Of a stretch of 64,000 nt of DNA, positions 705 through 42,138 are shown piece by piece (the stretch's first letter is position 1; the number at the start of each line of letters is the position of its first letter). Below the pieces are notes generated by a model. The model ran no database searches and was not told the DNA's origin. It worked only from the letters and a program-made list of their open reading frames with translations. This DNA is from Andalucia godoyi And28 (lineage: Eukaryota > Protista > Jakobida): NCBI GenBank assembly GCA_009859145.1, contig VRVR01000041.1:1-64000 (forward strand), given 5' to 3'. Position numbers and translations under genes: made by a program.

Positions 705-802
705 TCCCCAGCATCATCTCAGAAAAAGTGCTGTGGACCATTTTCCGTATTTGTCCCCATCATTATCTCAGAAAAGGTGGTCTGGCGAGTTTTCCGTATT
801 TG
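705..802 (+). repeat. Imperfect tandem duplication, 2 x 49 nt, abutting repeat copy A
   Basis: TCCCCAGCATCATCTCAGAAAAAGTGCTGTGGACCATTTTCCGTATTTG (705-753) versus TCCCCATCATTATCTCAGAAAAGGTGGTCTGGCGAGTTTTCCGTATTTG (754-802). Confidence 0.8.
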
Positions 803-1284
803 TTGCCGCGAAGGGGACAGGCCCCAACACGCCCCACGGCGTTCTTCAGATAAATGTTCCGCGCTCCGTTCCCAATCTCGATCAATCGGTGGGCCACTTT
901 CTCAGCGTGACACGTGGTTCTTGAGAAGAGTGCATTTTGATGCTGACGGCCCTAGCAGCAGGCGTAGTGACACGTGGGTCTCTTAGTAGGTCTGCGGGAC
1001 CTAGGAGGCCCTGTATCGAGCGGCGTAGGCGTAGGCGTAGGCGAATGCGTCATCCCAGAGCACCCACGCCCACATTTGAATTAAAAAAGTGAACCAAAAA
1101 AAGTGAAACCAACGAATGATAGAATAGATGGCTACGGATGCTGCGTTAAAGAGTGTCGAAAATGCGGAGCCTGTGAAACCGACTGAATTCTGGCCGAGCG
1201 TGCGTAAGCACGAATTCCTGTGAAACAAACGTGCTAGTGTCGGCCGATGCTTCCGTGTGCATGACAATGACGTGTTATTATTCA
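802..1284. mobile_element. Dispersed intergenic repeat, copy A (putative non-autonomous element or decayed gene-family remnant)
   Basis: Left arm 802-964 and right arm about 1103-1284 align closely with 18941-19104/19380-19564 and 41749-41840/41920-42130. The block 1038-1080 is shared with copy B. The repeat is directly visible; mobility is inferred. Confidence 0.75.
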
Positions 1285-1405
1285 ACGGCGCATTTTCTTT
1301 CCAAAAACAGAATTATAATAATAAAAAATGGGAAAGCACTGCGCAGCACCGTGTTCGTTTGCTGTTGCCACAGATTCTTGTTTCTTGTTTCTCAAACAGC
1401 CCACC

Positions 1406-3379
1406 ATGCTGTCAGAATCCGTCTCGCGTCGCTTCCTTCCGACTATACCCTCCTTCGTATCAGTTTTCTTTTTGAGTGCGGTCTTCTTTTCCGTGCGGAC
1501 GAGTGCGCAGTGCTTTTGGGCCCCCGTTCCGACAAACCTGCCTGTAAGTCCGCTTCCGCAGGTGCTTGCGGCTGCATTTCGTTCTGCAGACGCAGTTTTC
1601 CAAGCACATCAACGGGAAGTCGGAATTCCGGGAACCGTGTATGGAGTCGCGTACAAGGGCCAGGTGTTCCACGTGTTCGGAGTTGGCAATCGCAATGCGT
1701 CCGACCGACTCAGTAGTGCACCAGATGAACGTACTCCTTTCCGTATTGGTTCCATTACAAAAGTGCTAACGACGATTAATCTTCTCCATGACGTACTCTC
1801 TGGCTGTGTAAGCCTCAGCGACTCACTTCAGCATGTTCTGCAGAACTTCTCGATTTCGATGCCGTTCCGCTTTCCTACAAAAGTTACTTTTGCAGATCTT
1901 TTGGGCCAGACGTCCGGTATGCCGCGGCTCACACCTTGTACCTCTGATGTCCAGTGTGAATATTCGACGAAAGAGATTTTGAACCGGATCGCGAGCGCTG
2001 GAATCGGAATGCTCTACACTGCGGGTTTCCGTGGTTCCTATTCAAACCTCGGCTTTAGCTTAGTTGGTCATGCATCCGAATATATCTGTGGGCGCAACGG
2101 GACTATAAGATACGCAGATTTAGTGCGTGAACAGGTGCTGAAGAAATGGTGGCTGAACGACACTGGATTCGTCTTCGACGACGAACTAAAGAGTCGAATT
2201 GCAGTTGGACTGATGCAGGATCCGTTGACAAAGCAATACACTCCCGCTCCACTTTACTCGATCGGCTGGAACAGCCCCTCTGGTGAGGCTTTTTCTACGA
2301 TTGCAGATCTCCTTCGTTTGGCAGATCATCTTATGCATGGCCTTTCGTTTGAAGATCAGCTGCTAAGCACTCCGGAGGCTGGCCTAGCAGCAACTGCGAC
2401 GGATGAGGTACTAGACACGTATTTGCGTCGTGAATTCTTTCGTCCGTCATTTGTGTTCAACGACAACTCTGCTTACGGACACCCGGCGGAGATGTTCGCC
2501 ACAATGAATGGGAATCTGCGAATGTACAGCAAGGATGGAGCAATTTATGGATACGAGTCAATGCTCGTCATGCAGCCTGACATGGATTTCTCCTTGGCTA
2601 TTCTGTCGAATCGGGATTCAACTGGAATGCGCAACATTACCCAGATGCTATCTGACATCATTGTTCCGGCGTTTGTGCAAGCTATCGGTGAAGCGGGGCC
2701 CTATCCATTCCTCGTGCCAGCGAATCCGGCTCAACTGCGTGGTGTCCTGGGCACTTTTTGGCTTCCGCGGCATTTGGGCTCCGTCAAAGTTGGTCTGGTT
2801 GCCAACAGCGGTCCTCTCAACTTTTCCGTCTTCATTGGCAGCTTGCAACTTTCGGGGTATTTGTCGTTCGTGGAGTCCCGATCGATCGTGCTGCCGTATT
2901 TCAACAATGGGGATGTGTTTGTGGCGGACGTTTACAGACTCGTCAATGTGCTGTTCCGTGACCCGACTATCAGTTGCCAAGGAGAAATGGGAGGCTACCC
3001 GATGTCGGAGTTTGTGTTTGCTCCGTGTGGTGCTGCTCAGCCCACCCAATTCTGCTACGTTTTCCATTTGACGATGGCCTACGGACCGAATAATGTTCTA
3101 ACGCGTGATGATGCACGTGACCAGCCTCCTCTGCCTCCTGTTCCTGTGAACCCCGTCGTCCCGCCAGCAATGCCCGATCCCAACAATTTCTGCGGCGATC
3201 GTGGCTGGACAAAGAAAGAAAAAGACGGTGCGATTGCTGCACTGGTGATTTTGGGGGTGTTCTCAGTAGTCTCCGTCGCTGCGAATATTGTGTTTTGGAG
3301 GAAGTCGCGCAAACCCTCCGGTGCAGCAGGCAATCTCTTGGAACCCGCAGATTCAGACTCGATGTACATTCGTTCGTGA
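1406..3379 (+). CDS. Membrane-anchored serine beta-lactamase/PBP-fold hydrolase (class C/LACTBL1-like)
   Basis: SxxK (FRIGSITK, about 1751-1762), YSN (2039-2047) and KDG (2531-2539) triad motifs. N-terminal hydrophobic signal after CCACCATG at 1406 (in-frame upstream ATG at 1328). Pro-rich linker and C-terminal TM helix GAIAALVILGVFSVVSVAANIVFW. Confidence 0.85.
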   Translation: MLSESVSRRFLPTIPSFVSVFFLSAVFFSVRTSAQCFWAPVPTNLPVSPLPQVLAAAFRSADAVFQAHQREVGIPGTVYGVAYKGQVFHVFGVGNRNASDRLSSAPDERTPFRIGSITKVLTTINLLHDVLSGCVSLSDSLQHVLQNFSISMPFRFPTKVTFADLLGQTSGMPRLTPCTSDVQCEYSTKEILNRIASAGIGMLYTAGFRGSYSNLGFSLVGHASEYICGRNGTIRYADLVREQVLKKWWLNDTGFVFDDELKSRIAVGLMQDPLTKQYTPAPLYSIGWNSPSGEAFSTIADLLRLADHLMHGLSFEDQLLSTPEAGLAATATDEVLDTYLRREFFRPSFVFNDNSAYGHPAEMFATMNGNLRMYSKDGAIYGYESMLVMQPDMDFSLAILSNRDSTGMRNITQMLSDIIVPAFVQAIGEAGPYPFLVPANPAQLRGVLGTFWLPRHLGSVKVGLVANSGPLNFSVFIGSLQLSGYLSFVESRSIVLPYFNNGDVFVADVYRLVNVLFRDPTISCQGEMGGYPMSEFVFAPCGAAQPTQFCYVFHLTMAYGPNNVLTRDDARDQPPLPPVPVNPVVPPAMPDPNNFCGDRGWTKKEKDGAIAALVILGVFSVVSVAANIVFWRKSRKPSGAAGNLLEPADSDSMYIRS

Positions 3380-3816
3380 CCCACATTTCCTTTTGTCGTC
3401 GTCGTCTTCTTCTTCTTCTTTTTCTTTTCTCCCTTTCTGTCGTGGCTTTTGTTGTCAACAATCAAGCACCGTTCATTTCAGTGCTTGCACTTGCCCGCGA
3501 GAGATTGCGTGTATGTGTTCTGTCCTTGAAGAGGACAAACTACCATCCTATACCGTGGTTTTGATTCATTACATAAAATACTGACACATACATTCAGCAC
3601 AGCAGCGTTCCGATAGAAATTGGAAAGGACACGCCTTCTTTGTTACTCTGCACTTCTAATCGATTTCTCGCACGCAAAATTGACAACAACGAATAAAACA
3701 AACAAACAAACACTATCCATTGAGAAAAACGGAGGAAGGGGAGGGAAAGAGAAGAGAGAAAAGAGAAAATCCGATATGATACGTGCTCGGCCGTCGTCTG
3801 CCTGGCGAAAACGGAT

Positions 3817-4401
3817 TCATGTGAGCAATCGATCGATTTCGGACTTGGCAACCTTTAATCGCTGCTGGAACCTCCTGCGAACTGCGTCTTCTTCATCACA
3901 AATCGTCTGCCAACTTTCCTTTTCCTTTGAAACGGATTTTGCGAGTTCTCCAATGACGTCCTTTGTTGAAGAACTCCGTTTTTCGAAAGCGTCGAGTCGA
4001 GCTTTCAGGGACGCCAATTCCAGATCCAGCGATGCCATGCTCTTGGAATGGTCAACCCGACACTTGTTAAACGACTCGACGTGGGCATGAAACGACTCTT
4101 TCAGCAGCTCGTCTGATTTGATCCGTGCAGATGATCGGTTCGAACCCGCTCCAGACCCGGATCCAGATCCACCACGAGCCCGCGCTCCACCAGCCATGCC
4201 TGGTTCTGCATGGTTGAGAGACCCACGATAGAAAACACCATCTGTACTGCTGCTTTCGTTGGTTGAACTGGAGTTCGTACGCGGACGTGTGTACGCGGCG
4301 GCGGCATGCGAGAAATCATGTGACTGATCGATGTGCGGAGGCGACGGGAAGTCCGGAGATCCAGTCGAGCTCGCCGACGAACTTGTGGACGTAAACGACA
4401 T
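3817..4401 (-). CDS. Hypothetical protein with Ser/Gly-rich N-terminus and C-terminal coiled coil
   Basis: ATG at 4401, 194-aa ORF with heptad-like LDLELASLKARLDAFEK. An upstream exon cannot be excluded. Confidence 0.6.
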   Translation of the reverse strand: MSFTSTSSSASSTGSPDFPSPPHIDQSHDFSHAAAAYTRPRTNSSSTNESSSTDGVFYRGSLNHAEPGMAGGARARGGSGSGSGAGSNRSSARIKSDELLKESFHAHVESFNKCRVDHSKSMASLDLELASLKARLDAFEKRSSSTKDVIGELAKSVSKEKESWQTICDEEDAVRRRFQQRLKVAKSEIDRLLT

Positions 4402-4948
4402 TGTATGTATGCAAGCACTGTATCCCGTGTGCTATGGTGTGAGCGTCAGCAACACAAAAGATGCGGAACCAGGACTGGAAACCAAAAGACCGCGGTGGGT
4501 CATTTCTTCCGCCAAATCAAAAACGGGATTCGACGAGTCCGGTTTTTTTCCCACCACCGCAGTGTTACTCCCCATCGCAGTTCTCGTTTTTGTCCAGTGT
4601 GGGCGCAGTAGATGAGCAAACGACGCTTGCATCGACGGTCGGTCTGCTCATCCATGTCTGTCATCGTTGACTGTCAAAAATCTGCTGTAGGCAAAATTCC
4701 GCAAAGGAAAACATAAAACGGTTCGCTTAAAACGTCGGGGGAAAACCTCCCGTTTTTTTACTCGTTTATCTATCTATCCAACTTTTTTGTAAAAATTCAA
4801 CATCTTTTTTTTTTTTTTGCGTGCGTTTGAAAAGGAAATTTTGATTGTGCGAATCTCTTCTTTTCCGGTGATACCTGAATGATGCTGTTCGTAGAATTCG
4901 CATCAGCAGTAGTAGCGTCTCATTCAGCTCCGATAAAACACCAGCAGC

Positions 4949-5551
4949 ATGGATCCAATTGAGAGGTTGTCAAAGGAACTGCAGGAAGAGTATGTAAAAA
5001 CGTCGAAGCAGGTTGAAACGTATTTCAGTTTGTTTTCCAAAGTTGACGACAGCCAACATCCGCAGCATCCGGCGTCCTTGGAGCTCTCGGAAGCGCAGAG
5101 ACCAGGTGGGATGGAAGAGGCACGGCGGCATCTGCAGAGGGAGTATGAAGATGCGTTGGTAACCCCAAGAATACCGGACATTCGAAAGGGCGTGGATTTT
5201 TCCAGCCAAGCTGTCGTGCCCGGCAGCACAGGCAGCATCCACGGTTCGTTCGAGACTTGGCTAGCTTCGGATCAGTTCGATGTGAAGCAGGTCGCCGATT
5301 CTATGGGAGCTGCGCAAGAGAAATACATGCAGGATCTGCAGAGTGTCCTGGGCGAGTCGAGAAAATGGAGATCGGCACTCTCTGACCCCAAGATGGACAA
5401 ACAACCGCTGCATAACGGCCGCGACGTCAGCTCGGTCCGCTATGCGCCATATCCCGAACAGCGGAATGCCTCGTTTCGCATGCGCAGCATCAGCGATCGC
5501 GAGCTCGATCTAAGCAACTTCGACATTTCGACGCTGAAAAGAATGCGATGA
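4949..5551 (+). CDS. Hypothetical protein, 200 aa, possibly nuclear
   Basis: ATG-initiated ORF with protein-like composition, RYAPY (PY-NLS-like) and a basic C-terminus KRMR. No family recognised. Confidence 0.65.
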   Translation: MDPIERLSKELQEEYVKTSKQVETYFSLFSKVDDSQHPQHPASLELSEAQRPGGMEEARRHLQREYEDALVTPRIPDIRKGVDFSSQAVVPGSTGSIHGSFETWLASDQFDVKQVADSMGAAQEKYMQDLQSVLGESRKWRSALSDPKMDKQPLHNGRDVSSVRYAPYPEQRNASFRMRSISDRELDLSNFDISTLKRMR

Positions 5552-5687
5552 ACCGGAAAATGCCCTGCCGATGAACGATCTTTCTGCTTTACCACTGGCT
5601 TCTTTTCTTATTTTTAATAATAAAATCTTTTTTTCTTCCCTCACCACCCCCTCCCCCCTTCTCTCCACGTCTCATTCGTTCTTCTAA

Positions 5688-7940
5688 TTAACGTCTGCGA
5701 ATGTGACGAGTCTTGCTCCTCTTCTTCTTTGGTCCATCTCGACTTTCCTTACGCTTGTTGGCCTTCATCTCCTTCATCAGCGTTCCGTCCATTCGCTTCA
5801 GTTTCTTTGGATTCTTGCTTTCAGAATTGGCCTTCTTGTACAGACTATCAAGAGCTCTCGACTTTTCGGATGCCGACATTTCGGAGTTCTCCAAAATCCC
5901 AGAGGTCTTATCTCGAAGCTTGTTCACTTCACGATTGAGATGATGGTGCTTTCGTGCTTTGGCCTCGGCAACCTTCTTGATGGGACGAGAGTTCAGTTCC
6001 TGGAACTTCGCCTTCTCTGCCAAAATCTCAGTCTTCGTTACCGGCGCAATTGCAGTCGAGTAAATTTCCTCCGAGTCACGGAACCACGCAGGAGCAGCGT
6101 CCAGATCGTCGAAGGCGTAGCGATTGTACGCCGCATCAATCATATCCATGCGATTCTTCTTCTTCAGCATTTTCTTACCGATCGCCATGATCATAGCCTT
6201 CTGATCAATCGGCACTTCCTCAAACTCGCCATCGGAGTCGTCGTCGTCTTTTGCAGCGGAAGGCACCTTGCGATTTCTCGAAATCACGCCACGGCCGTCG
6301 TCTTCTGAGTCACTTGCAGAGTCCGAATCGGAGTCAGACTCGCTGATTTCGTCCGAGTCCGCATCACTGTCGTTCTCTGCCTGTTCGCGCGACCGCTTTC
6401 GGGACACTGGCTGCTTGTCAGGAAGCGACATGTCTGCAACGTCAAAAAAGTTCGACGAAAACCACCTGTTGCTCGAAACTCCATTTGCAGCAGGCTTTGG
6501 CAATGTGGAAACGACTCCTGCAGAACCGTCTTCCAAAGGGGCAGGAGCGTTCATTTTTCTCGCTTTGTACATCTGATACATCCGATCAAGGTCGTTTTCC
6601 AAGTCATGGTAGTCCTCATCATCTGACTCCCACTCCAAAGGTTCCTCGTCGTCGGGAATACTGTCGTCCACATCCTCATCGGAAACAGGATCCAAATTGA
6701 CATTTCCCGATTTGGTCGCAGCAGCAAACAGTGAAGCATCTCCATATGTATCAAGGAGCAAAGACGTGTCCATATCATCATTGGTCATTCCTCCCAAACG
6801 GGCTTTCTGTTTCAATTTCTTGTCCCGCTCTCGCTTCTCCTCTTTTCTCTTTCTCTTCGCTTCTTTTTCACGGAATTCGCGCAGTTTTTCGTTGACTGAG
6901 TCAAGTGCATCCTCTTCTTCTTCCACCTCGATCTCTTCGACTGCACTGGCGGCTCTCGACTTCTTTGATGCCGCCGAGTCTTGCATCAGCTTCTTCGCTT
7001 TCAACCGGGACTTCAGCATCGCCTTGAGATCTCTTTTGCCGAGAACGCGGACGTCTTTGAACAACTCAAACAGCTCAGTCGAAAAAACAGAAGCATACTT
7101 CTCCTTCTCTTCATCAGAAACGCTAATCCGGTTTATCGTCGCCAAGAGGATTGCCGGAGAATCGTTCAACACAAAATCTGTAAATGAGACTTCCTTGAAA
7201 AGCAACGTCGCACCCTCCTCATATCCCTCTCGATTTCTTTTTTGTTTTTCATTGATTGTGTGTGGCTTGTTCTCCTCGACGTCTTCAAAGACATGTTTGA
7301 TGTCAAACAGCTTCGGATCAATTTTCTTCGGGCAAATGAAATCCTGGCAAACAACGAATATTTCCGCGGAAACTGCACGGGAAGACGCAGGCTTGGTCGC
7401 ATGCACTTTCTTGAACAATTGTTGGAACACCCAGATCAAAGAGTTGTAGTCCTTGGAGCGGAAGACCTTGGAGACAAACGTGCCTCCCGGTCGTAAGAAC
7501 TCACAGGCCAGCTTCAGAGAGCACAGCACAAGATCCGCCTGCGTGAATGCATCGCTCACCCAAGTTGTACCCATATTTGGCGCACCATCATGCAGAACGA
7601 CGTCTGCATTCCATGTCTTCAGCTCTTTGCGGATTGCTGTGCGACACTTTTCCGTCGTAATGTCCTCCACAAGCGTAATGACATTCTTGATTGGCTTGAT
7701 TGGAACAAGATCTACTCCGATAATAAGCGAACTCACAGGCATGTATTTCTGTGCAACTTGCATCCAACCACCAGGCGCCGCACAAAGATCGATGCACACA
7801 CGAGCAGAGTTCAGAAAGTCAAACTTCTTGTTCAGCTGGATCAGCTTAAAAGCGGAACGCGCTCGAAAACCTTGTTCTTTCGCAAGCACATAGTACTTAT
7901 CCAGACGCTCTTTTCCTGTCTTTTTCCCTTGTTTACCCAT
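5688..7940 (-). CDS. SPB1: Pre-rRNA 2'-O-ribose methyltransferase SPB1/FTSJ3
   Basis: MGKQGKK...RLDKYY...[33 protein letters not shown] and SRAVSAEIF motifs, plus the Spb1 C-terminal [13 protein letters not shown]. The true ATG is at 7940; the track's upstream extension is UTR. Confidence 0.97.
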
Positions 7941-8428
7941 GACAAATGTCCACACAGATAGCCCACCAAACGAATCAAAAAAAGAAGAAAAATCGATCAG
8001 CAATAATAACCCATTAAGAGAGAGAAGAAGAACATTAAAGTAAGAGTTTTTCCACACACGAGAACACAAGAAACGAGATGCGAGCGAGATGTCTGAGAAA
8101 ACAAACTCAAACGCCTTTGCAAAAAGTCGCTCATAGCAGGCATCAAGCAGCGGGGCATCAAGTAGGGCCTTTTTTTTTCCGCGAACCTTTTGATCTTTGG
8201 CTTTTTGGAATTTGGATGCATGTTTTTTCTTTAATCGCATAAACATCCTAATTTCCATACGGATGCTCTCTTTTCTGTTTTTCGTTTTTCTTTGGAATTA
8301 TTAATTTTTTGCGTATTTTGTTTTTTTTATTTTTGTTTTGTTTTTCTTCCTCTTTGTTTTTCGATACTGTTGCTTACATTGTTTCCAATACTTCTGCATT
8401 GGCCATTCGCGGTCCACAGTTCTACTCT

Positions 8429-11400
8429 ATGCCATTGGACGAAACATCACAGCACATCGTTGAGCTGTTTGTATCAACGTTTCAGCTGGTGTCTCCTGCC
8501 GAGCGCAAAGCCGCAGAAGATCATTTGGCAAAGGTATGTGAATGCTGCCTCTTTCACTGATTCTTTGTTTTTTCACTTTTTCTTTCATCTCCGATGTCTG
8601 TCGTGGTTTGTGGTTTTTTTTTTTTTTTTTTTTGTTGTTGCTGCTTCGATGCATGATTGTTGGGCTAATTTTATTTTTTCTTCTCGTATTTGTGTCGACA
8701 TTATGATTACTATGGATATTTATTGTTTTTGCGGGAAAAACATGAAATCTAGATTGGGGAACAACCAGGTGCAATTTCTGCAGTGGGGGCGCTGTTGTCA
8801 CACAATGAGGTGTCTCCACATGTGAAGCAAGCGATTGCGATTTGGCTGAAGAACACAGTGGTCCAGAACTATCGCAAGTTGCATGAGGGCGATCGCAGCT
8901 TTATCCAAAGCCGCGTTCTTGGCTGGATGATGGATTCGGAACAGTCTGTTCGCGTTCAGATGACAACGGTACTGCGAACGATTGCAGACGCCGATTTCAT
9001 GGAGAACCCGATGCCCATCGTGAACACGATCCTGTCGACGATGCCAATGGACAGTCCTTCGAGAATGGCGGGCTCCATTCTTGCATTGCGGACCATTTGC
9101 AAAGCGTATCAGTACCGCAGTGTGGAGCGGCGACAGTGTCTGGGCGAAATCGCACAGGTGATTTTTCCATTGCTGCTGCAGATCGGGCAATCTCTTGTTG
9201 CACAGGATTTGAACGCGATTGCCAATCATCCCGATGTCGAATTGGTTGGCCTGCTACTCGTGCTCATTTTCAAGACGTTCTATTCTTGCACGTTCTTGAC
9301 ATTGCCGGACTACGTACAAGTTCCTGAAAATTTTGCGAACTGGGCGTCGTTGGTTGGGCATGTTTTATCCATGCAGATTCCGCAAGGCACCTATTCCGAT
9401 ATTGCGGATCCCAGAAACACATTGTGGAAAGCGAAGAAGTGGAGCGCAAACATTGTTTGGAGAATGCTGATTCGATATGGCAACCCCAAGACCGCCTCAA
9501 AGGAGTACAAGCCATTCTCGGAGAGATTCATGTCCACGTATGCATGCTCGTTTTTGGACGTCTTCTTGTCCATCATCGCTGCAACGGTTCATCATTCTAT
9601 TCCTCCAAAGATCGTCAATTTCGCGCTGAATTACACTGCACATGCACTTCAATTAGCCATCACTTTCAAGAAGATCAAGCCCATGCTGCCGCAACTGCTG
9701 TTTGAATACTGTTTTCCGATCATTTGCTTGAACAAGGAAGACTTTCAGTTGTTCGAAGAGAATCCAGTGGAGTACATCCGACGGCAAAACGACATCATGG
9801 ATGAATATGAGAATCCATCCAAGACTGCAATGAATTTGTTTACCGAAGTCTGTGTTCTGCGTGGGAAGGACTCGCTGCCTCTCATCACTGGTTTCATCAA
9901 CGAGCATCTTCGCTCGTCATCGCAAATCCACGTTGTCGTCGGAGTTCTGCGAGTTCTCATTGCACTGTGTGATGTCCTCAAATCAGCGCAATTGCCGTAC
10001 CGTAATCACTTGGAGACGATGATCACATCGTCGATTTTCCCGTTGTTCCGCTCGGAATCTCCATTCTTGCGCTCGTTGGCTTGTACAGTTGTCGAAAAAT
10101 ATGCAGATGTGCCTTGGAAGAATGAACAGAACCCTGTCATTGTGGCCCAGTATCTTGTCCAGCTGATTGGAGATAACATACTGCCAGTGCGTGTTAGTGC
10201 TGGCATTGCCCTGCGACCGTACATTGACAAGAAGATGGTGGCAGAGACTGTGATCAAGCCCCTTCTTCCGGAAGTGGTTGCACAATACTTGAAGATTATC
10301 CGTGAAATCGAGAATGACTGGCTGGTCAATTCTTTGGAGAGCATTGTCGAGATATTTGGGCCTGAAGTCACCCCGTTTGCCGCCGATCTTATGAAGTCCC
10401 TGTGTGCTTCTGCGCAACACATGCTGGAAGAGTCCCAAGATGAAAACGGTTCCGAGGACTCTGTCTTTGCCATTCAGTCCTGCTTTTCGACCATGGCAAC
10501 TCTCATTGGTTCCGTCGGAACGGCATTTGCAGAATCCAACAAACCCGTATCGCAGGAACTGTTCAATGCCATCGATGCCATCATGGTTCCTTTCATCGCG
10601 AGCATTTTCCAGTCCCAATATGTCGATCTCCTGGAGGACATGGTGCACTTGCTGGTCCAGCTGACGTTCTTTGCTCCGTCGGTGTCTCCTGCCATGTGGT
10701 CTCTGTATCCATTGATGTGCGATTCCTTTAACACGTGGGCTTTTGATTACCTGGAGGAGTTTTTACCCATTTTTGACAATTATGTCTCGCATGGTATGGA
10801 TGACTTCTGTCTGAACGATCGTCCGATAAGGCTTCTGCAGGTGATTCAGCGCTCCATCTCCTCCTTCTATTTTAGACCAAACTATGAGAATCCCGATGCG
10901 CCAACGCACATTCCTTTTGAGCAACTGCCGCAACTGATGTTGAAGAAGCTTCCTATTGGCACCTCGGAGCGGCCATTGTGGCACCCGTGTCGCCTAATCG
11001 AGGTCGTCGTGCAGCATGTGGGCTCGAAGCTCCCGGAACAGATTCCCACCTTCCTTTCTCTTGCTGTTCCCCTTGTTATTTCCGGTGCACGGACTGTGCC
11101 TCTTCGAATTCTTGCTTCCAACATTGTATGGGATGCTCTGCATGCCGTTCCGGAAGTCTCGCTCAATGCTCTTACGGGAATGCATGCAATGGATCCGCTT
11201 TTCAATCGTCTATGTGCTCGGGTGTTGCCCCATTTGACGAGGGCATATGATTGCAAGGTTGCAGCGTTGGGAATGCTTTCCTTGCTGAAGCTGATGGTAA
11301 CCAGGAGTCCTGCTGTTCCGGCTGATTGGATTGCGACGTTGGATCAGCGGTCTGCAGTCATTCTGGTTTGGATCATCAAGGTGCTGAAGAAGGTCCGCGA

Positions 11401-11983: not shown

Positions 11984-12100
11984 TAGTAGTAGTGGTGGTG
12001 GTGGTAGTCGTAGTGGTAGTGCTGGTGGTAGTCGTCGTCGTAATCGTAGCAGTAAAGGTTGGATTGTGATCTTTCGAATGAGGACAGTTAAAACCTGCGT

Positions 12101-18870: not shown

Positions 18871-19567
18871 TTTCAGCGCCTACACTATACACTGAGCATG
18901 CATATCTACGAACGGACATGCATATCCAATCTTGCATCCCGTTGCCGCGAAGGGGATAGGCCCCCAACACACCTCACGGCGCTCTTCAGATAGATGTTCC
19001 GCGCTCCGTTCCCAATCTCGATCAATCTGTGCGCCACTTTCTCGGCGTGGCACGTTGTTCGTGAGAAGGGTGCATTTTGATTCTGACGGCCCTAGCAGCA
19101 GGCGCTTTTCGTGTCCTCAGTTGCAGCGATTGATGCACCTGGAGATACGAGACGAAGAGGCAGTAGGAAGACGGTGGGGTTTTGCGACTGCGACTGCGCC
19201 TGGTGCACTGGTAGCAGAAAAGCACGAGTTCTGTAAGAGACGGTCCCTGAGGCTTCTGCTTGGGGTTGGCTACGCTGAGTGGAGATCGTGTCTTGGCAGT
19301 GCGCAGCGACTCGGCGGTAGGCGAATGCGTCATCCCAGAGTACCCACGCCCACATTTGAATAAAGAGAGTGAAACCAAAAAACCAAACCAACGAATGATA
19401 GAATAGATGGCTACGGATGCTGCGTTAAATCGTGTCGAAAATGCGGAGCCTGTGAAACCGGCTGAATTTCGGCCGAGCGTGCGTAAGCACGAATTCCTGT
19501 GAAACAAAACGTGCTAGTGTCGGCCGATGCTTCCGTGTGCATGACAATGACGTGTTATTATTCAGCG
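18871..19567. mobile_element. Dispersed intergenic repeat, copy B (longest)
   Basis: Left arm 18871-19104 and right arm about 19380-19564 are shared with copies A and C. Unique core about 19105-19315. TTCAGCG occurs at both boundaries (18872-18878, 19561-19567). Confidence 0.75.
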
Positions 19568-19695
19568 GGGTGTGTCGTTTGCCTTTGTTTTTTCGTTTTC
19601 CGACTTGTTTGCAATTGAATTGAATTGACTTGCACTGCATTTTGTTTTCGGGGGGGGAAAGGAAGGAAAAAAACAGCGACCGAATTGAAAGACGA

Positions 19696-24682: not shown

Positions 24683-24713
<31 letters not shown>

Positions 24714-28335: not shown

Positions 28336-28407
28336 TCGGGTGTAGTATAGCGGTTAGTATTCCCGCCTGTCACGCGGGCGACCCGGGTTCGATTCCCGGC
28401 ACTCGAG
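28336..28407 (+). tRNA. tRNA-Asp (GUC)
   Basis: Acceptor stem TCGGGTG/CACTCGA, D-arm TAGTATAGCGGTTAGTA, anticodon arm CCCGC-CTGTCAC-GCGGG, T-loop GGTTCGATTCC. Confidence 0.97.
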
Positions 28408-28668
28408 AATTTTTTTTGTTTCTTATTTGACTTGTCAGCGTTTTCCGTCGGGTGTTTTTATTTTTTTTTTCTTTTTTTGCGAATTTGCATGATGCACCGA
28501 TGCACATTTCTGGAATTCCGATCCGAAATCCCCGACTGCGGGGGGGAGACTGGACATCTGGCATTTTGCAGTCCGTCGGAAAAAGAAATCGCGGTGGGGA
28601 AAAAGAAAAACAAGAACTAAGAAAAAAGCGCATTCAGTATATACGCAGATATTTGGGAGGGGGGAGGA

Positions 28669-33903: not shown

Positions 33904-34264
33904 GGCGTATTAATAAATAAGCCCACGGACCACTGCTCTGGTCTTCCCCAGCAGCCCGGAAGGGTCCCCGCCAGCTCTATGCTGCTTCCAATTTTTTTGT
34001 TAATCCAGCGGTCGTAGGCGCCCCTGATATCGCGCTCTCCTTTGCTTACCGTTCTTCTGTCTCGATGGGAAATGCTGCTTCTTCTTTTCAAATTGGTTTT
34101 GTTTTTCAGTGATTTATGTAAATGCAGCAGGTCTCTCTTTTTATCCTAGGACCATCCTGGTTTTTTTGGTGATCGCGTATCTTTCCTCCTCGCGAGAAAA
34201 GAAAGATTAATTTTTTTTATTTTAAAGAAAAAAGAAAAAAAAAACACCGAAAGCTTGATAATCA

Positions 34265-35188
34265 ATGAGTCGGCCAGCAGTCAGCGAGAAACCGCAGCTC
34301 GATTCTGGAGAGTTAAAGTCTGTAACGGCTGCAGTCGTCCGATTTGGGCTTGGAGTGACTGCAGCCGTTGCAGGAGTTACAGCTGTCTATCCGTTTGATA
34401 CGATAAAGACGAAATTGCAAAACGAGCGCAAGGTGAAAGCCGATGCGGCAGCTTCGGGTCCGCGATACAATGGGCTTGTTTCGTGCGGGAAGTATGTGAT
34501 GCAGCATGAAGGTGTCCGGGGTTTTTACAGAGGTCTTGGGGCGCAGGCGTCTGGGAAAGGGCTTGAGAAGGGATTCCAGCTGTTTTTCGTGGATATGCTT
34601 CGGCAGGCGATTACGGGACCACCCTCCAAGTCGAACTACTCGATTGGCACCGAGCTCTTTGCGGGTGCAGTGGCCGGAGCTATTCAGGTCGTAACGACAA
34701 ATCCGTTTGAACTTGTCAAGGTCCGCATTCAGACGTCGCAAAAGTCCACGCTAGAGGTGCTGCGAGACGTTGGGTTCAAAGGCCTCTTTTCAAAAGGACT
34801 CTCGGCGTGCTTGGTCAGAGATGTTGCCTTCGCGTCTCTGTATTTTGGTATTTATGCACAATACAAGGTTTCTGTATTTGGGACTCCGCGAGTGAGCAAC
34901 GCCGAAATGTCGCTTCCCCATCTGTTCGTTGGCGGCTCGCTTGCAGGATGCATCAGCGCGTGGGTGACCACTCCAGCGGACGTCATCAAGACTCGGATGC
35001 AGGCCGAACAAAAGGGAATCAGCGAATACAAAACACTTGTCGGCAGCGCAGCAAGAATCCTCCGAGAAGAAGGGTTTACAACGTTCTTTCGAGGCGCGGT
35101 CCCAAGAATGCTGCGGTCCGCCCCGCAGTACGGAGTCATGCTCCTGACCTACGATTGGCTGCAAGGGATTGTGCAAGGGAAGCAATAA
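34265..35188 (+). CDS. Mitochondrial carrier (SLC25), aspartate/glutamate-carrier-like, without EF-hand extension
   Basis: Three Px[DE]xx[KR] signatures (PFDTIK, PFELVK, PADVIK). RDVAFASLYF and RSAPQYGVML resemble AGC/citrin carrier domains. Confidence 0.9.
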   Translation: MSRPAVSEKPQLDSGELKSVTAAVVRFGLGVTAAVAGVTAVYPFDTIKTKLQNERKVKADAAASGPRYNGLVSCGKYVMQHEGVRGFYRGLGAQASGKGLEKGFQLFFVDMLRQAITGPPSKSNYSIGTELFAGAVAGAIQVVTTNPFELVKVRIQTSQKSTLEVLRDVGFKGLFSKGLSACLVRDVAFASLYFGIYAQYKVSVFGTPRVSNAEMSLPHLFVGGSLAGCISAWVTTPADVIKTRMQAEQKGISEYKTLVGSAARILREEGFTTFFRGAVPRMLRSAPQYGVMLLTYDWLQGIVQGKQ

Positions 35189-35244
35189 AACTAAATAATA
35201 ATTAAGTAGAGAAGCATCAAAACAAACCAGAAAATCAAAACGGT

Positions 35245-37950
35245 TTAGGATGCTTGCAATCCGTCCAGTGCGCCAGCAAGCCACAGCTCAAGCGCGGAAA
35301 CCCAATCATCGCGAGTCTTGCTCGAGGATGCTTCCAAATCAAGCGGCCGAGCAGCACTCACAACAGAAAAACAAACGTCTTCTCGCAAGCCACCCTTTTT
35401 CTTGCTTGCTTTCTTTTGGAGGACTTCGGTTTTCAATCCAGAAGAAACGCCGGTGACTTCCGCTCGAAGAATGACTTCCTTTTTCACTTTTGGGTTTCGT
35501 GCATCCTTTTCCGAATCGGCCCATGAAATACCAGAACCATCCGATAGAACGAAAACAAAACGCGATCCATCGGAACCGTTTCGAGCATGCTTGACAAACA
35601 AGGACCCATTCACCATCATCTTCCAAAACGCGACTTTCACTGCAAGTGCCTCCGCAGCAGCCGCCTTCTCCTTCTCCTTCTCCTTCTCCAGGGCTTCCTG
35701 CTGTGCAATATGAGCCGCCTTTTGCTCTTCCGCATCCGCAGCGACCTCTTCATCCTCGTTCTCCAGCCGCTGCTGATGCTTTGATCGCTCTCCAGCAGGA
35801 CTCTTGGCATCTGTCGAAAGACTGTCCTCGTCCTCCTCTCCGTCAACATCAAACTCATCGTGGATTTCGGCAGTCATGGCAGAATCGGAATAATCATCTG
35901 CTGTTGTCTCATCCATCAACCTCCGATCGGAGTCTGCGGAATGGTCATCTGAAAGCGACTGGAGTTCCGGAGAATCCTGCCCGCTAACAGTACGCTCATG
36001 TTGATGATGATGATGCTGGAAAGTAGCCGCAGCATCTGGGAAGAGAACCGCTTGCGAGATACCCGAGGACCCATTGTCTACCGAAGACCCGTGAGACCGC
36101 GCATTTTGTACAGATGCCCGGTTCTCTGCGGAACCTAGAGAAGTATCCTCAATCGTCCTATCCTGAGCACTGTCTTTTCTTTCCAAGACGGCCTCCCTTG
36201 CTCCATTGTCGGCGGTCGTTCGGACGCCTTGATTCCTATCATCATCATCATCATCAACAATAACGCAACTGCCGTGAACTACAACCACATCATCAACAGC
36301 AGTACCATCGACAAAACCACTACCATTGTTGCTGCTGTTGCATTGATTATCATCAACAATCACGTCCACAATGTCATCTTCGATATCAACATCGTCGTCC
36401 GTATGCGACCCCGTATCTTCCACTGCACTTGGATGGACGACAGCCGCCACCGGACTGACGAGCCCCAGGTTTGGATGATGCCCGGCAAGGTTGTTTTCGT
36501 CATTTGGATGTTCCTCGTTGTACCGCTCCTCGGCTTCCTCCATCTTATCCAATTCGTCATCCACATCTGTCGTTTCATCGGCATCTTCTCCATCGTCCAG
36601 GTTCTCAAGCCCGTCGCCGTCCTCATCGTCTTCATCGTCATCGTCATCGTGGATGATGAAATCGTCAGCAACATCTGCATCTTCATCCTCACTTGCGTCC
36701 GCGAACTCCTCTTCGCTCTGGACAATCTCCTTCACAAACACGCGGTCGGAGAAGCTTACGGTGCGCTTTCGCTTTGCAGGAGTATTGAGGTGGTCCACTG
36801 CATCATCCGGTACGGCCGCAAACAACTCGACAATAGGATGCACAACGACGTCGGGCAACACATACAGTTTTGCTTCGTGCTCTAGCACATCCGCTGGCGC
36901 AGCTTCCGGTTGCGGTAGAGAATACATTGAAGTGTTGTTGGAAGACTCCAGTATCCTTGCAACTGCTCGATCAAGCTCTGCCGCGGCAGCATCGCAAGCA
37001 ATCTGTTTCTGAGCAACAGTCGCCAACAAGTCGGCCTCCAGTTTTTCCGCGTGCTGATTGATTGCATCTCGCACGAAGGTTTCTCTGAGATCAGCTTCCA
37101 CTTTCAGCCTCAACACCAGATCCTTCCTGTCCGCCTTCTTTGCGCTCTTCTTCAGCTCGTTCAGCTCCGTGCTGAGAGACTCGATAAGCAAGCTGTACAA
37201 GCTATTCTTCATGTCCTCTGTGATCGACACCACCTTCTTCGCCACGACAGCCTCGGCATGGACACGCGTTGAGGACTTTAGAGAAGACATGTACAATCCA
37301 AGACTCGAGACGGTCTGCTCCAGCTGTGTTTCCTGCATTAAAATTCGCTCCTTGATCGCCGACACAAACACGTCGTGTCGGTTCTTCTCTTCCCTGGTGA
37401 TCTTCTCTGTCGTCTCCCTTTCTGCATTGAGTTGGACCATTTCCGATTGCAACTTGGCGTTATGCAACTCCAAGTCCTCAATTTGCGACCGCAGAGAAGA
37501 CGCTTCCTTTGAAAGCTTGGTCTCCTCGGTAGAAAACGCCCTTTGCGACTCCTCCAATTTCCTCTTCAACCCATCCGATTCCTGGACGATGAAATCCCGC
37601 TGCAACCTTGCCTTTTCAAGCGCTGCCTTGGCCTCGCCCACCTGCTTCTGAATGGCCTCGATCTCTGCAGCCTCTTCCTTCCGATGCATTTCCGACGTCT
37701 TCACCAGCTCATTCCGAACTGCCGTAAGTTTCGCCGTCTTCTCTCGACTCTGGGACACATCCGCTTGCACCAGCTGCAGATCCGACTGCACACCCTCCAG
37801 CTTCGCCTGCTCCTGAGACAGCTGAAACTCAAGCTCGGACAATTCGCTCTGAAGATCCGATTGAGCGCTCTTCAGGGTCGGAATCACCAACGATTCCAAT
37901 TCTAGAATCCGTGCATTCAGCTCCGGAACACTGCTTCCCACCATCGCCAT
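35245..37950 (-). CDS. Coiled-coil protein with acidic low-complexity middle and C-terminal PLC-type PH domain
   Basis: N-terminal heptads, D/E-rich centre, and C-terminal MVNGSLFVKH...VCFSVVSAARPLDLEASSSKTRDDWVSAL (PH fold with terminal Trp helix). Confidence 0.85.
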   Translation of the reverse strand: MAMVGSSVPELNARILELESLVIPTLKSAQSDLQSELSELEFQLSQEQAKLEGVQSDLQLVQADVSQSREKTAKLTAVRNELVKTSEMHRKEEAAEIEAIQKQVGEAKAALEKARLQRDFIVQESDGLKRKLEESQRAFSTEETKLSKEASSLRSQIEDLELHNAKLQSEMVQLNAERETTEKITREEKNRHDVFVSAIKERILMQETQLEQTVSSLGLYMSSLKSSTRVHAEAVVAKKVVSITEDMKNSLYSLLIESLSTELNELKKSAKKADRKDLVLRLKVEADLRETFVRDAINQHAEKLEADLLATVAQKQIACDAAAAELDRAVARILESSNNTSMYSLPQPEAAPADVLEHEAKLYVLPDVVVHPIVELFAAVPDDAVDHLNTPAKRKRTVSFSDRVFVKEIVQSEEEFADASEDEDADVADDFIIHDDDDDEDDEDGDGLENLDDGEDADETTDVDDELDKMEEAEERYNEEHPNDENNLAGHHPNLGLVSPVAAVVHPSAVEDTGSHTDDDVDIEDDIVDVIVDDNQCNSSNNGSGFVDGTAVDDVVVVHGSCVIVDDDDDDRNQGVRTTADNGAREAVLERKDSAQDRTIEDTSLGSAENRASVQNARSHGSSVDNGSSGISQAVLFPDAAATFQHHHHQHERTVSGQDSPELQSLSDDHSADSDRRLMDETTADDYSDSAMTAEIHDEFDVDGEEDEDSLSTDAKSPAGERSKHQQRLENEDEEVAADAEEQKAAHIAQQEALEKEKEKEKAAAAEALAVKVAFWKMMVNGSLFVKHARNGSDGSRFVFVLSDGSGISWADSEKDARNPKVKKEVILRAEVTGVSSGLKTEVLQKKASKKKGGLREDVCFSVVSAARPLDLEASSSKTRDDWVSALELWLAGALDGLQAS

Positions 37951-37975
37951 CTCAACTAACCAGCCTCTGTGCGTG

Positions 37976-37995
37976 GTGTGTGTGTGTGTGTGTGT
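37976..37995. repeat. (GT)10 microsatellite
   Basis: Directly visible in the divergent intergenic region. Confidence 0.9.
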
Positions 37996-38316
37996 ACTAT
38001 GTAATATAATAAACGATAGGAACGCCTACAAAGAGAAACGCAATACCAAAAAAAGATTGGTCGTTGGTGGAGCTTGAATTGCACGCTACGGATTGCATGA
38101 TATGCAGCAGCGGGGGAATTATTCCCGCCTTTTTGTATTACAGTAGATTCGGCGGATCGTCATCGCAATTTTTGTTGGGTTTCGTTTTCTCTTTGCGCTT
38201 TCCTTATTTCCTGCACGTAAGTATGCATGAATTGGGAATTGGCTGGGGAAGAGGGGTTGTGGGTGTTTTTTTTTTTGTTTTTTTGTTTTTTGAAGTAATT
38301 TATCTTGTTTTTGTAG

Positions 38317-41300
38317 ATGGGGCTTCTTGATAAACTTGTATGTAAGACAGCTGGTGGTGCTTCCGTCAATGCACCAATCAAGCGATCTTCTTCGTGGTTT
38401 TGCGACGAAGATGGTGACGAATCGTTGTCGAAAGCCCCGAAAACAGCGCTAAAGCCGGATGTTTCTGTCGCAAAGGTCGTCGCAGCTGCTGCAGCCCCTG
38501 GCCACAACGACGCTCCTAAATCCACAAGTCTGGGTCTTTCCGATTCTGTGAAGCAGATTCTGAGAAGAGCGTCTGCAACGACAGGCGCGCAAGCCGAGAC
38601 TTGCAGCACACGGACACCGAACTCGTCGCAGCCTTTGGCCGTTTCGTTTGACGAGTCTCTCCGGTCGTTTGTGTCACAGCTGCAATCACAGACTCTTCGA
38701 AAAGACGCGGGAGGAAATGTTGCGATCCGGTATTCCGCGGATGAGTGGAAAGGAGCAGCGGCTGCGGCGGCGGCTGCAGAGTGTCGCGGGGAACTGGGGG
38801 GAGAAGATGATAAGGACAATAAGGACGTAGCAAGGACGTCCAAAAAGGGTGCATCTCGAAAGAAGGATTCCAAGAATGAACTAGGAGAAGACATGGCACA
38901 ATTGTCGAAAATTGAGTATGATTTTCGGGCTCGGCAGAATTCGGTTTCTGCACTGCAGAATGCCCGGTTTACGCTGAACACACTTGGATCCGAGTCTGTG
39001 GACCACGTTGCGTCGGCGATTCTCAAGAATCAGCACAAGAGCGGGGGCAGAGTTGCGTCGTTCAAGCGGCTGAAATTGAAATCCAAGAAGAAAGGTGGCT
39101 TCAATTCGTATGGTTCGAAATGGATGGGCAAGAACCGAGTGTACAAATTCTCTCGAGTGTCGTCTGCGAAGCCCATGGCATCTCGTCTGGAGGCACGAGA
39201 GCTGGATGAAGATACGATGTTGGCAGAGTCCACCGTGGACATTGGGATTCCGAAAGCGAAGAATAAGAAGAATCAAAAGGCTGGAAAGAAGACCCGAAAC
39301 ACGTTCGATTTCGTCGGCAGCGAAAGTGAGAACGACAGTGAAGATGGTGGTGACGGTGACGGCGACGAACTGCAGAAGGAGAACGACGAAGAGTTGGAAG
39401 AGACGCTTTCCAAAGTTGTCGAAGCGTTCCATCAAGCATTTTTGAGAAAAGATCATGCTGCCATCGATGCTTGGATTTCCGAGAATCTGCTGCATGTTTG
39501 CCGGGAACTGTTTGGCATTGACGAATTTCGTGAGGGGCAGTACGAGTCGTTTTTCGAATTACTGCACGGGCGCTCTGTGCTTTCGGTGCTGCCAACGGGC
39601 CAGGGAAAGTCGCTGCTGTTTCAAATTGCCAGTGTGCTCCTCCCGTCTTTGGTGATCGTCATCAGTCCTCTTATTTCGCTGCTGCAGGATCAAGAAGAAA
39701 AGCTTCCTCCGTTCATTGATGGTGTCTTCTTTTTTGGAGAGCTGGTTCGAAAACAACGAAAAGCTCTCTTCGATCACATTCTCGATAACTGTGCGAGTTC
39801 TTCCATGTCACCAACGGTGGTTTTCTTGTCTCCAGAACGGTTTGTCAGTGGAGAATTTCAGAATTTGCTGAAGCAGGCGTCCGGCCACATGAGCAACTTG
39901 CTCGTGTGCATCGATGAAGCCCACTGCATTTCAGAATGGTCGCACAACTTTAGGTCGTCGTATTTGCGACTAGGCTCGGCTGTGACGGCTGTCAAGAAAT
40001 CGTTTGAGTGCGTCCAAATATTGGCACTGACTGGATCGGCTACTGTGCGCGCGCAGCAGTCCATCAAAAACGTACTGTTCCCCAGCCATCCGGAAGAATG
40101 CGCTGTTGTTTCATGTGCGCAGTCTGTTCGAGACAATGCGGTTATTCGGATTTACCTGACCGAGGACAAGCGAAAAGCTCTTGACAAGTTGTTTTTGGAA
40201 AAGGAATCGGAACTGCATGGACTGACGTCCGTCATGGTGTACGTGAGTTTTCAACACGAAGCTGATTCGATTGCGGCAATTTTGAGGTCCAGCGGAATAC
40301 GCTCGGACTCGTATCATGCTGGCAAAACATCTGCGGCTCGGAACCGTGTTCAGGAGAATTTCATGTCTGGAAAACTGCACGTCGTGGTCTGCACCGTTGC
40401 ATTTGGAATGGGAATTCACAAAGAGGACGTTCGCGCTGTTGTCCACTATGGACTCCCTCGCTCCTTGGAAGGGTATGTTCAGGAATCCGGGCGGGGAGGC
40501 CGGGATGGCAAGCCGTACTTCTCCATTGTCATTTTTGAGAAGAAGGACTTTGGATTGTTACGAAGTCTGTGTTTTTCTTCTGCTGTGGATCTCAGACAAG
40601 TCCAGCAGCTATTTTTCCACATTCCGAAACTCGCTGCGTTTGACGGTCAGTACATCGTGGATATAATGGACGTCGAAAAGCAGCTTGCGCTTCCGCGGTA
40701 TTCTGTGGACACAATGCTGGCATATGCGTGCATGGAAGCTCCTGAATACTTTCGCGACCCCATCTTTGAGACCGTCTCCTATGATGTATCGTTTCGATCC
40801 GCAGCGCCAGAAGCGTTGGCATCCACGTTCCGGGTTGCAGCTGGCATTGCGGCCACGTCGCAGTGCAGATATGGAACGTACAACACCCGGGCGTTGGAAG
40901 TCTGCAAGCATCAGAAGATGCCATTCGACGAGTTCTTGTTCGAACTGGAGAGCATGTCTGAAGCAGGAAACTGCTATTTGAAACGTGCTTCATCTGGATG
41001 CATCGTCACGTTCAAGTGCTCGGGCAAAGTCTCTGCGCAGATGGCACGCGTGGCAGAAACTGTGCACCAGAGGATATCCGCTATCGAGACGTCTTCAGTC
41101 CACCGACTGCAAGCAATATATTCACTGATGAGCAAATTTGCGAACCGCGAGGAAGACGTATCGGCGCAATTCCAATCGGCGCTCAATGACTACTTTACGC
41201 TCGAAGCTCAATTGCAGAGTGTCGAGATGGATGAGCACATTGGAGAAACCGCGCTTCTCATTACAGACATCAAGGCTGTGCTTCATCAGATGCCGCGCGA

Positions 41301-41637
41301 TGGTATGAACGCGATTACGGTTTCCAAAATCATGCATGGCATTCCTTCTCCTCAGTTCCCTATGGCATCTGGAGCACTTGAAACGTTCTGGGGAGAACAT
41401 GTCAATGTTCCCTTCGAGCAGATCAAGCTCATGGCATCCAAGATCATCCAGCAGATGGACATTGTCGATCTAGCGGGTCCCAGCCGCAAACGCAGTCTAA
41501 CCATTGCGCAAGAAGCCATTCTGCAGGTCCAACACCACGATGACGGTGGCGATGGCAGTGGCGACGGCAGTGGCGACGGCGATGGCGATGATGACAGCAG
41601 TGATGAGGATGAGAATAACAGTGCCGATGAAAAATGA
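38317..41637 (+). CDS. RECQL4: RecQ4-type DNA helicase
   Basis: LPTGQGKSLLFQ (motif I), DEAHCISEWSHNFRSSYLRL (RecQ4-like motif II), VCTVAFGMGIHK and YVQESGRGGRDG. Disordered N-terminus with SFKRLKLK. Confidence 0.88.
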   Translation: MGLLDKLVCKTAGGASVNAPIKRSSSWFCDEDGDESLSKAPKTALKPDVSVAKVVAAAAAPGHNDAPKSTSLGLSDSVKQILRRASATTGAQAETCSTRTPNSSQPLAVSFDESLRSFVSQLQSQTLRKDAGGNVAIRYSADEWKGAAAAAAAAECRGELGGEDDKDNKDVARTSKKGASRKKDSKNELGEDMAQLSKIEYDFRARQNSVSALQNARFTLNTLGSESVDHVASAILKNQHKSGGRVASFKRLKLKSKKKGGFNSYGSKWMGKNRVYKFSRVSSAKPMASRLEARELDEDTMLAESTVDIGIPKAKNKKNQKAGKKTRNTFDFVGSESENDSEDGGDGDGDELQKENDEELEETLSKVVEAFHQAFLRKDHAAIDAWISENLLHVCRELFGIDEFREGQYESFFELLHGRSVLSVLPTGQGKSLLFQIASVLLPSLVIVISPLISLLQDQEEKLPPFIDGVFFFGELVRKQRKALFDHILDNCASSSMSPTVVFLSPERFVSGEFQNLLKQASGHMSNLLVCIDEAHCISEWSHNFRSSYLRLGSAVTAVKKSFECVQILALTGSATVRAQQSIKNVLFPSHPEECAVVSCAQSVRDNAVIRIYLTEDKRKALDKLFLEKESELHGLTSVMVYVSFQHEADSIAAILRSSGIRSDSYHAGKTSAARNRVQENFMSGKLHVVVCTVAFGMGIHKEDVRAVVHYGLPRSLEGYVQESGRGGRDGKPYFSIVIFEKKDFGLLRSLCFSSAVDLRQVQQLFFHIPKLAAFDGQYIVDIMDVEKQLALPRYSVDTMLAYACMEAPEYFRDPIFETVSYDVSFRSAAPEALASTFRVAAGIAATSQCRYGTYNTRALEVCKHQKMPFDEFLFELESMSEAGNCYLKRASSGCIVTFKCSGKVSAQMARVAETVHQRISAIETSSVHRLQAIYSLMSKFANREEDVSAQFQSALNDYFTLEAQLQSVEMDEHIGETALLITDIKAVLHQMPRDGMNAITVSKIMHGIPSPQFPMASGALETFWGEHVNVPFEQIKLMASKIIQQMDIVDLAGPSRKRSLTIAQEAILQVQHHDDGGDGSGDGSGDGDGDDDSSDEDENNSADEK

Positions 41638-41677
41638 CAGCGGTCGTAGGTCGATGGCATGAAACACAAAACCCAAC

Positions 41678-42138
41678 TTTCAATACGCCTACATCATACA
41701 CTGAACATGCATATCTACGAATGGACATGCATATTCAATCTTGCATCCCGTTGCCGGGAAGGGGATAGGCCCCCAACATGCCTCGCGGCGCTCTTCAGAT
41801 AGATGTTCCGCGCTCCGTTCCCAATCTCGATCAATCTGTGACCTACACGCGGGACATGCAGACACTTTGCTTCCGCCGCTCGCGATACTCAGTCGCCTTA
41901 TGGCACAAACGTTGCAAAAAGTGAAACCAACAAATGATAGAATAGATGGCTACGGATGCTGCGTTAAATCGTGTCGAAAATGCGGAGCCTGTGTCGCAGG
42001 CTGAATTTTGGCCGAGCGTACGTAAGCACGAATTCCTGTGAAGCAAAACGTGCTGGTGTCGGCCAGTGTCGACCGTGTCTGTTTATGAATGCTTTCCTTC
42101 CGTATATGCACGACAATGACGTGTTGTTACCTCAATCG
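41678..42138. mobile_element. Dispersed intergenic repeat, copy C
   Basis: Left arm 41678-41840 is shared with B. A different core at 41841-41919. Right arm about 41920-42130 is shared with A and B and carries an insertion near 42065-42100. Confidence 0.75.

Follow-up and report, generated by a model that had tools for sequence, protein, structure and literature searches.

The first 64 kb of scaffold VRVR01000041.1 from the jakobid Andalucia godoyi (assembly GCA_009859145.1), referred to here as the window, contains five copies of a repeat of the nuclear genome that is interspersed, non-coding and short (~0.46-0.70 kb) and appears to represent a family not described before. In a self-BLAST of the window this element, with its five copies, is the sole dispersed repeat family, and since no other dispersed repeat is seen there, the match between its three well-conserved copies, A, B and C, lies far beyond chance. 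It would seem fairly probable that the copies belong to a family of non-autonomous mobile elements, or are the relics of one. An earlier sequence-only reading had described three copies in the same orientation. All three are real and lie at the coordinates it gave, and the count is extended to five by two older copies, D on the minus strand and E on the plus strand, which came to light in sensitive BLAST searches and in nhmmer searches with a profile built from A, B and C. The copies and their blocks are as follows.

Copy A, 802-1288, plus strand: L1 802-891, M1 892-964, A core 965-1036, M2 1037-1097, R 1098-1288.
Copy B, 18871-19568, plus strand, the longest: L0 18871-18940, L1 18941-19031, M1 19032-19104, B core 19105-19316, M2 19317-19375, R 19376-19568.
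Copy C, 41678-42138, plus strand: L0 41678-41749, L1 41750-41840, core 41841-41914, R 41915-42138.
Copy D, 17138-16975, minus strand: an old, diverged left arm (L0 and L1), detected by nhmmer with an E-value of 1e-13.
Copy E, 44481-~44800, plus strand: left arm 44481-44640, followed by an A-rich junction and a diverged start of the right arm (~44643-44800).

The two conserved arms that had been reported are clearly present. In the block alignment the left arm, L1, is 91-96% identical between A, B and C and the right arm, R, is 90-95% identical, with the 100 nt beyond either end of each copy showing only 59-69% identity, which is what this aligner yields for unrelated DNA. The left extension L0 (70 nt in B) is common to B and C, where it is 91% identical, and has no demonstrable counterpart in A, which is either truncated at its 5' end or has had that end replaced. 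Directly adjoining the left end of A, at 704-801 (+), is a 49-nt tandem duplication with units that are 82% identical, and the motif GTCCCCA occurs four times at 651-760. The tandem repeat was considered as the L0 homologue of A and rejected, as it gave a signal in the hidden Markov model only when A itself was included and none with an independent profile or in the block alignment.

Between the arms the picture is different from the one first drawn. A variable core had been proposed, which holds for C relative to A and B but not for A relative to B. These two had been thought to share a single 43-nt block, when in fact they have in common M1 (90% identical) and M2 (91.5% identical and ending in an A-rich block), together 134 nt beyond the arms and both absent from C, so that the cores that truly differ are 72 nt in A and 212 nt in B. 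To judge from these blocks, A and B form one subfamily and are set apart by a single indel region. Part of the core of A repeats the M1 of the same copy, as an internal duplication, with GTGACACGTGG found at both 907 and 967. The 74-nt core of C has no match elsewhere in the window and aligns to the M1 block of A and B at 69%, the background level of the aligner, and the right arm of C has ~30 extra nt near 42069-42098. The suggestion that the element exchanges or captures internal sequence is not borne out, given that A and B are one indel apart, that the A core derives in part from M1 and that the C core matches nothing in the window. Arms that are 90-96% identical, set against a C core at background, are a pattern typical of non-autonomous derivatives that keep only their ends.

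Several smaller features recur within the copies. An A-rich internal block (AAAAAGTGAAACCAA-like) lies just 5' of the right arm at 1083-1110 in A, 19363-19390 in B and 41905-41925 in C, and E keeps the same block at 44668-44690. Two details of the right arm had been noted correctly: the string CCTGTGAAAC occurs twice in A and twice in B, and the hairpin CGTGC-GTAA-GCACG is found at 1199-1212 in A, with one mismatch in C.

The copies end sharply and at common positions. A left terminus is shared by B, C, D and E and reads CTTTCA(G/ATA)CGCCTACA, with the preceding base being G in B and A in C. The right terminus, shared by A, B and C, is TTCA(A/G/AT)CGG (TTCARCGG) at the end of a right arm that closes with ...GTGTTATTATTCARCGG. 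The two termini resemble each other over ~8 nt. As had been stated, there are no terminal inverted repeats: when the 70-nt ends were compared with the reverse-complemented opposite ends, the best local scores were reached by 82-619 of 1000 shuffles, and a repeat scan of the window gave no inverted repeat pairs within the copies. Direct repeats at the two ends of the same copy are short. The best in B is TTCAGCG (7 nt, 18872-18878 and 19561-19567; 49 of 500 shuffles reach its score), and the best in C is TCAAT(C)ACGCC (10-11 nt, 41680-41689 and 42147-42157, TCAATACGCC and TCAATCACGCC; 39 of 500 shuffles). These same-copy boundary matches outscore every cross-copy pair, with each having a p of only ~0.08-0.1. 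They may be target-site duplications at a preferred target or a short terminal redundancy. The TTCAGCG bases may belong to the element itself, since the right end of A has TTCA.CGG in common with B.

Copies D and E add depth in time. Their left arms are ~69-74% identical to those of A-C by BLAST (~69% for D), as compared with the 5-10% divergence of A, B and C from each other, giving at least two age classes. The family was therefore amplified repeatedly over time and not by one duplication. D has no recognisable right arm. In E the nhmmer match covers 44504-44626 with an E-value of 1e-7, and the sequence downstream of its left arm aligns to A with z = 5.4, a score reached by 0 of 200 shuffles. 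This alignment crosses the A-rich block, which reads GAATGAAAAAAGTCGAGCAAAA in E and GAATTAAAAAAGTGAACCAAAAAAA in A, and continues into the beginning of the right arm, so that E is an old copy with its parts in unchanged order; the string TTATGAATGCT is also common to E and the extra segment of C. It had seemed conceivable that the A-rich block was the tail of a retroposon, with R a separate element downstream. This was rejected, because in E, too, the head is followed by the A-rich block and then by the beginning of R.

The presence of only three well-conserved copies, all on one strand and within 42 kb, could also be explained if an intergenic region had undergone one or two segmental duplications. 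The resemblance between copies breaks off sharply at either end, though, and the flanks and the neighbouring genes are unrelated, which argues against the single segmental duplication that the sequence-only reading had named among its refuting conditions. Two of the copies are in addition much older, one of them on the other strand, and the body of C differs. We regard such an origin as scarcely credible.

The position of the copies relative to genes is as follows. The window has ~24 genes on both strands, mostly without introns. The draft genome of A. godoyi is ~20 Mb in 66 scaffolds with few introns and tightly packed genes, selected close gene pairs being separated by spacers of 44-691 nt with a mean of 217 (PMC7050145). 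All five copies are intergenic, in a window with ~23 spacers, and the spacers that hold them, of 1049, 1015, 826, 745 and 588 nt, all rank among the seven longest. When the elements are subtracted from the spacers of A, B and C, ~560, 320 and 365 nt remain, within the size range of the element-free divergent and tandem spacers of the window, which measure 74-733 nt apart from a single one of 1299 nt. No copy is found in the short spacers that separate convergent genes in the window. A, C, D and E lie in tandem spacers, where both genes are on the same strand, and all four are sense to both neighbours (p ~1/16). B lies in the divergent spacer between an AATase-like gene (-) and the Thg1 gene (+) and is oriented towards Thg1, so that each of the five copies points towards the start of the next gene. 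C starts 40 nt past the stop codon of a helicase gene and D, in the sense direction, 39 nt past that of the AATase-like gene. From the right end to the next ATG the distance is ~40-120 nt for A, ~127 nt for B and ~325 nt for C. The genes beside the copies are of unrelated function, among them those for a beta-lactamase-domain protein, Thg1 and a GH15 glucoamylase.

This placement raises the question of whether the copies are cis-acting intergenic modules, kept or co-opted for gene expression, which would not exclude that they spread by transposition. From position and orientation, the head, ~40 nt past a stop codon, would act as a 3' end or terminator, and the tail, 40-325 nt before an ATG, as a promoter, a 5' untranslated region (UTR) or a leader exon with a GTAAG donor, a string found at 1204 in A, 19484 in B and 42022 in C. 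The facing of all five copies towards the next gene's start, the sense orientation of all four in tandem spacers and the starts of C and D at 40 and 39 nt past a stop codon would all fit such a role, as would the much better conservation of the arms than of the core of C, and there is a precedent in the SIDER retroposon relics of Leishmania that act in UTRs (PMC2323293). Against this, only five of ~23 spacers carry a copy, the neighbouring genes have no function in common, the identity of D and E with A-C has fallen to ~69-74%, a drift like that of neutral DNA, and the orientation statistic is weak (p ~0.06). On balance a cis-acting role as the explanation of the family would seem unlikely.

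Some open reading frames (ORFs) of 85-161 codons cross the copies, which could be taken as a trace of a decayed multicopy protein-coding family, as the sequence-only reading had proposed in its alternative, or of the coding region of an autonomous transposon. The frame and extent of these ORFs vary between copies, and none has a Pfam match above cut-off. The six-frame translation of the arms of B gave no match at E<=10 among 5.8 billion proteins, the 143-codon sense ORF running through L1, M1, core and M2 gave none among 1.84 billion representatives, and no core of any copy has a protein relative. Reverse transcriptase, tyrosine recombinase or transposase domains were found in no ORF of the window, and 24-25-mers of both arms had no matches in metagenome contigs or in viral contigs. 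R has a 31-codon ORF (MATDAAL...KHEFL) that remains open in A, B and C alike. By direct reading its changes are eight non-synonymous to two synonymous, and because of this ratio it would not be under coding constraint. The same ORF was considered as a coding 5' exon that would be joined, through a splice donor at GTAAG, to the gene that follows. In copy A there is one in-frame acceptor, the use of which would put ~25 residues before an apparent signal peptide (a hydrophobic N-terminus, judged by eye); for this reason and for the lack of coding constraint the coding exon was rejected. With the variable frames, the missing protein and Pfam matches, the 8:2 ratio and Rfam searches that gave nothing consistent, we consider a coding ancestry extremely unlikely.

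The arms might instead encode RNA, one or both of them being dispersed genes for small non-coding RNAs of the snoRNA-like or Sm class. The short hairpin with its GTAA loop, a Sm-like site (AAUUUUGG) in copy C and C/D-box-like strings (ATGATAG...CTGA) in R would be in line with this. Scans against Rfam gave no family at threshold, nor any at E<1, and the few relaxed matches in A, B and C (E 2-9) differ from copy to copy. The fold energy is no better than that of shuffles (z = -0.40 and -0.58, from single-sequence folds), and in the alignment folds compensatory pairs amount to 1 of 54 and 1 of 11, with several pairs broken, the three to five sequences giving these folds low power. For the GNRA-type hairpin itself there is no covariation support. 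The G-to-A change in the hairpin of C, which is the mismatch mentioned above, breaks a pair and is not compensatory, and neither the Sm-like nor the box-like strings are the same from copy to copy. A small-RNA origin of the arms is thus very improbable. Sequences resembling the A and B boxes of tRNA genes were looked for in the head; the resemblance is weak, was seen by eye and is supported by no tool.

The copies were also compared with known classes of element. VIPER is a tyrosine-recombinase (YR) retroelement, whose autonomous form encodes Gag-like, YR and reverse transcriptase/RNase H (RT/RH) proteins. SIRE of Trypanosoma cruzi consists of the first 185 bp of VIPER, a private internal region of ~30 bp and the last 220 bp of VIPER (PMC6681497). 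It would be the nearest architectural analogue: two conserved arms of nearly the same sizes as in the A. godoyi element (~165 and ~190 nt) enclose a short private core, terminal inverted repeats are missing and the host also belongs to Discoba. The private cores are longer here, 72-212 nt beyond the shared M1 and M2, and the likeness is one of architecture.

The conserved ends may be analogous either to those of SIRE and VIPER or to those of RIME and ingi. RIME and NARTc, which are non-autonomous, retain 5' and 3' portions of the autonomous non-long-terminal-repeat (non-LTR) elements ingi and L1Tc, respectively. Marks of the ingi/L1Tc clade are a 3' A-rich stretch and a 79-bp 5' signature (Pr77) with a ribozyme like that of hepatitis delta virus (HDV). 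Scans of A, B and C with Rfam gave no match to an HDV-like or Pr77-type ribozyme at E<=10. There is also no A-run at the shared 3' terminus of A, B and C (...GACAATGACGTGTTATTATTCARCGG), the A-rich block being internal and before R, and, set beside the 11-19 bp target-site duplications of RIME, NARTc and SIDERs, the best end repeats measure 7 nt in B and 10-11 nt in C. What the A. godoyi copies do have in common with these elements is their size, their intergenic sites, the bias to the sense strand and the presence of old, degenerate members. SIDERs are themselves ~0.5-kb degenerate retroposon copies that lie between genes and affect mRNA (PMC2323293).

Similarly, the joining of two unlike conserved modules by an A-rich block, in a short, non-coding, dispersed repeat with subfamilies, recalls dimeric short interspersed elements (SINEs) of the Alu type, but the copies lack a terminal poly(A), a clear target-site duplication and any convincing A or B box. 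No SINE head of the Pol III type was detected either, the copies giving no tRNA, 7SL or 5S match at E<=10 with ARAGORN or Rfam. The only tRNA found is a genuine one, a tRNA-Asp (GTC) gene at 28336-28407 that both programs identify, in the divergent spacer of two genes for ankyrin-repeat proteins. The conserved asymmetric ends, heterogeneous interior and lack of terminal inverted repeats and of clear target-site duplications are shared with non-autonomous Helitrons. The 5'-TC and 3'-CTRR of Helitrons are nevertheless missing, as the sequence-only reading had said (the left end being CTTTCA... and the right ...TTCARCGG), the flanks are not A|T and the only hairpin (CGTGCGTAAGCACG) is ~75 nt inside, in contrast to the GC-rich one that Helitrons have 10-12 nt from the 3' end. 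Without terminal inverted repeats the copies do not qualify as miniature inverted-repeat transposable elements or other DNA transposons of that kind. LTR elements are marked by TG...CA termini, a 4-6 bp target-site duplication and identical direct repeats flanking an internal region, and the copies are neither solo LTRs nor LTR retrotransposons, their left and right arms being unrelated and their termini not TG...CA. Overall, the element behaves as a two-ended non-autonomous element and fits no named family. The earlier description of it as an unclassified non-autonomous element stands in so far as the repeat is non-coding and dispersed, with sharp common ends and unrelated flanks, and its being non-autonomous is plausible.

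How such an element might have spread can be outlined as follows. The unit would consist of a ~165-nt head (L0 and L1), a dispensable body, an internal A-rich block and a ~190-nt tail (R), with the conserved ends recognised in cis by an enzyme that an autonomous partner supplies in trans. It would be because this enzyme recognises the ends that only the ends are conserved between subfamilies, and the body, not being needed for mobilisation, would be free to vary by deletion, tandem duplication and replacement. The varying body would give rise to subfamilies, with A and B on one side and C on the other, and D and E would be old, decayed copies. Copies would have survived only in intergenic spacers and sense to the neighbouring genes. 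The scaffolds with subtelomeric transposons or virus-like sequences were omitted from the A. godoyi assembly by its authors (PMC7050145), and the autonomous partner, being outside the window, may sit among them. The sense bias and the missing 5' extension of A lead us to lean towards an RNA intermediate, with caution called for by the absence of a poly(A) tail and of clear target-site duplications and by the loss of the 3' part of D; a retroposon mode specifically is, however, a tentative suggestion that we hold to be somewhat doubtful.

Several observations count against a mobile element. The copies have no hallmark of any transposon class, neither terminal inverted repeats, LTRs, terminal poly(A) nor Helitron ends, and no convincing target-site duplication, given the p of ~0.08-0.1 for each of the end repeats of B and C. 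The loss of the 3' part in D is the opposite of the 5' truncation expected from retroposition driven by a LINE (long interspersed element). There are, finally, only five copies in 64 kb, and any copy number for the genome is an extrapolation. Going further still, the family could represent a type of mobile element new to description, with asymmetric sequence-specific ends that carry no terminal inverted repeats, LTRs or poly(A), intergenic insertion in the sense direction in a very compact genome and a head and tail that now serve as terminator and as promoter or leader. Its movement might depend on the transposon or virus-like elements of the unassembled subtelomeres. We think this improbable.

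Other features of the window are recorded here. Between copy C and the GH15 glucoamylase gene there is a (TA)n microsatellite with a very AT-rich stretch, at 42290-42312. Shortly after copy E comes a gene that starts at 44920 and has a likely spliceosomal intron at 45120-45370 (GTATGT...TGTAG), within which is a simple-repeat stretch of (GTG)n and (GTGC)n. The longest spacer in the window, 1.3 kb at 55073-56371, holds no copy of the repeat. Next to it, the ORF at 56372-57274 (+), which has no Pfam match, contains a tandem array at 56703-56927 of ~5 copies of a 45-nt unit with 94-100% identity; the array, the only other repeat in the self-BLAST, would encode a 15-residue protein repeat. A gene for a mitochondrial carrier lies at 34265-35188. 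Of six proteins of the window present in the protein collection, this carrier alone has an NCBI source, and GenBank would seem to hold few gene models for the assembly. At 3380-5687 there is a stretch of 2.3 kb between two genes that has no ORF of more than 200 codons and no Pfam match and is unusually long for so compact a genome. A gene with introns or a fast-evolving gene may lie inside it. The best non-self match of the Thg1 of the window is only 61% identical, from which it follows that the databases hold no near relative of A. godoyi.

To come upon a short interspersed repeat of unclassified type in the genome of a protist is in itself routine, such repeats being common in genomes. A. 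godoyi, though, holds a key position as a reference species in the study of early eukaryotes and of mitochondrial evolution, and its 20-Mb genome has been described as compact and simple, with its repeats not characterised in the literature searched. If the window is representative, a family present at ~5 copies per 64 kb would make up a major part of the intergenic DNA, and extrapolating this density to the whole genome gives a copy number of around a thousand. Repeat masking would benefit from a description of the family, as would the annotation of UTRs and promoters. Such a description could point to an autonomous element hidden in the unassembled subtelomeres, and it would allow comparison with SIDER, RIME and SIRE of the related Euglenozoa.

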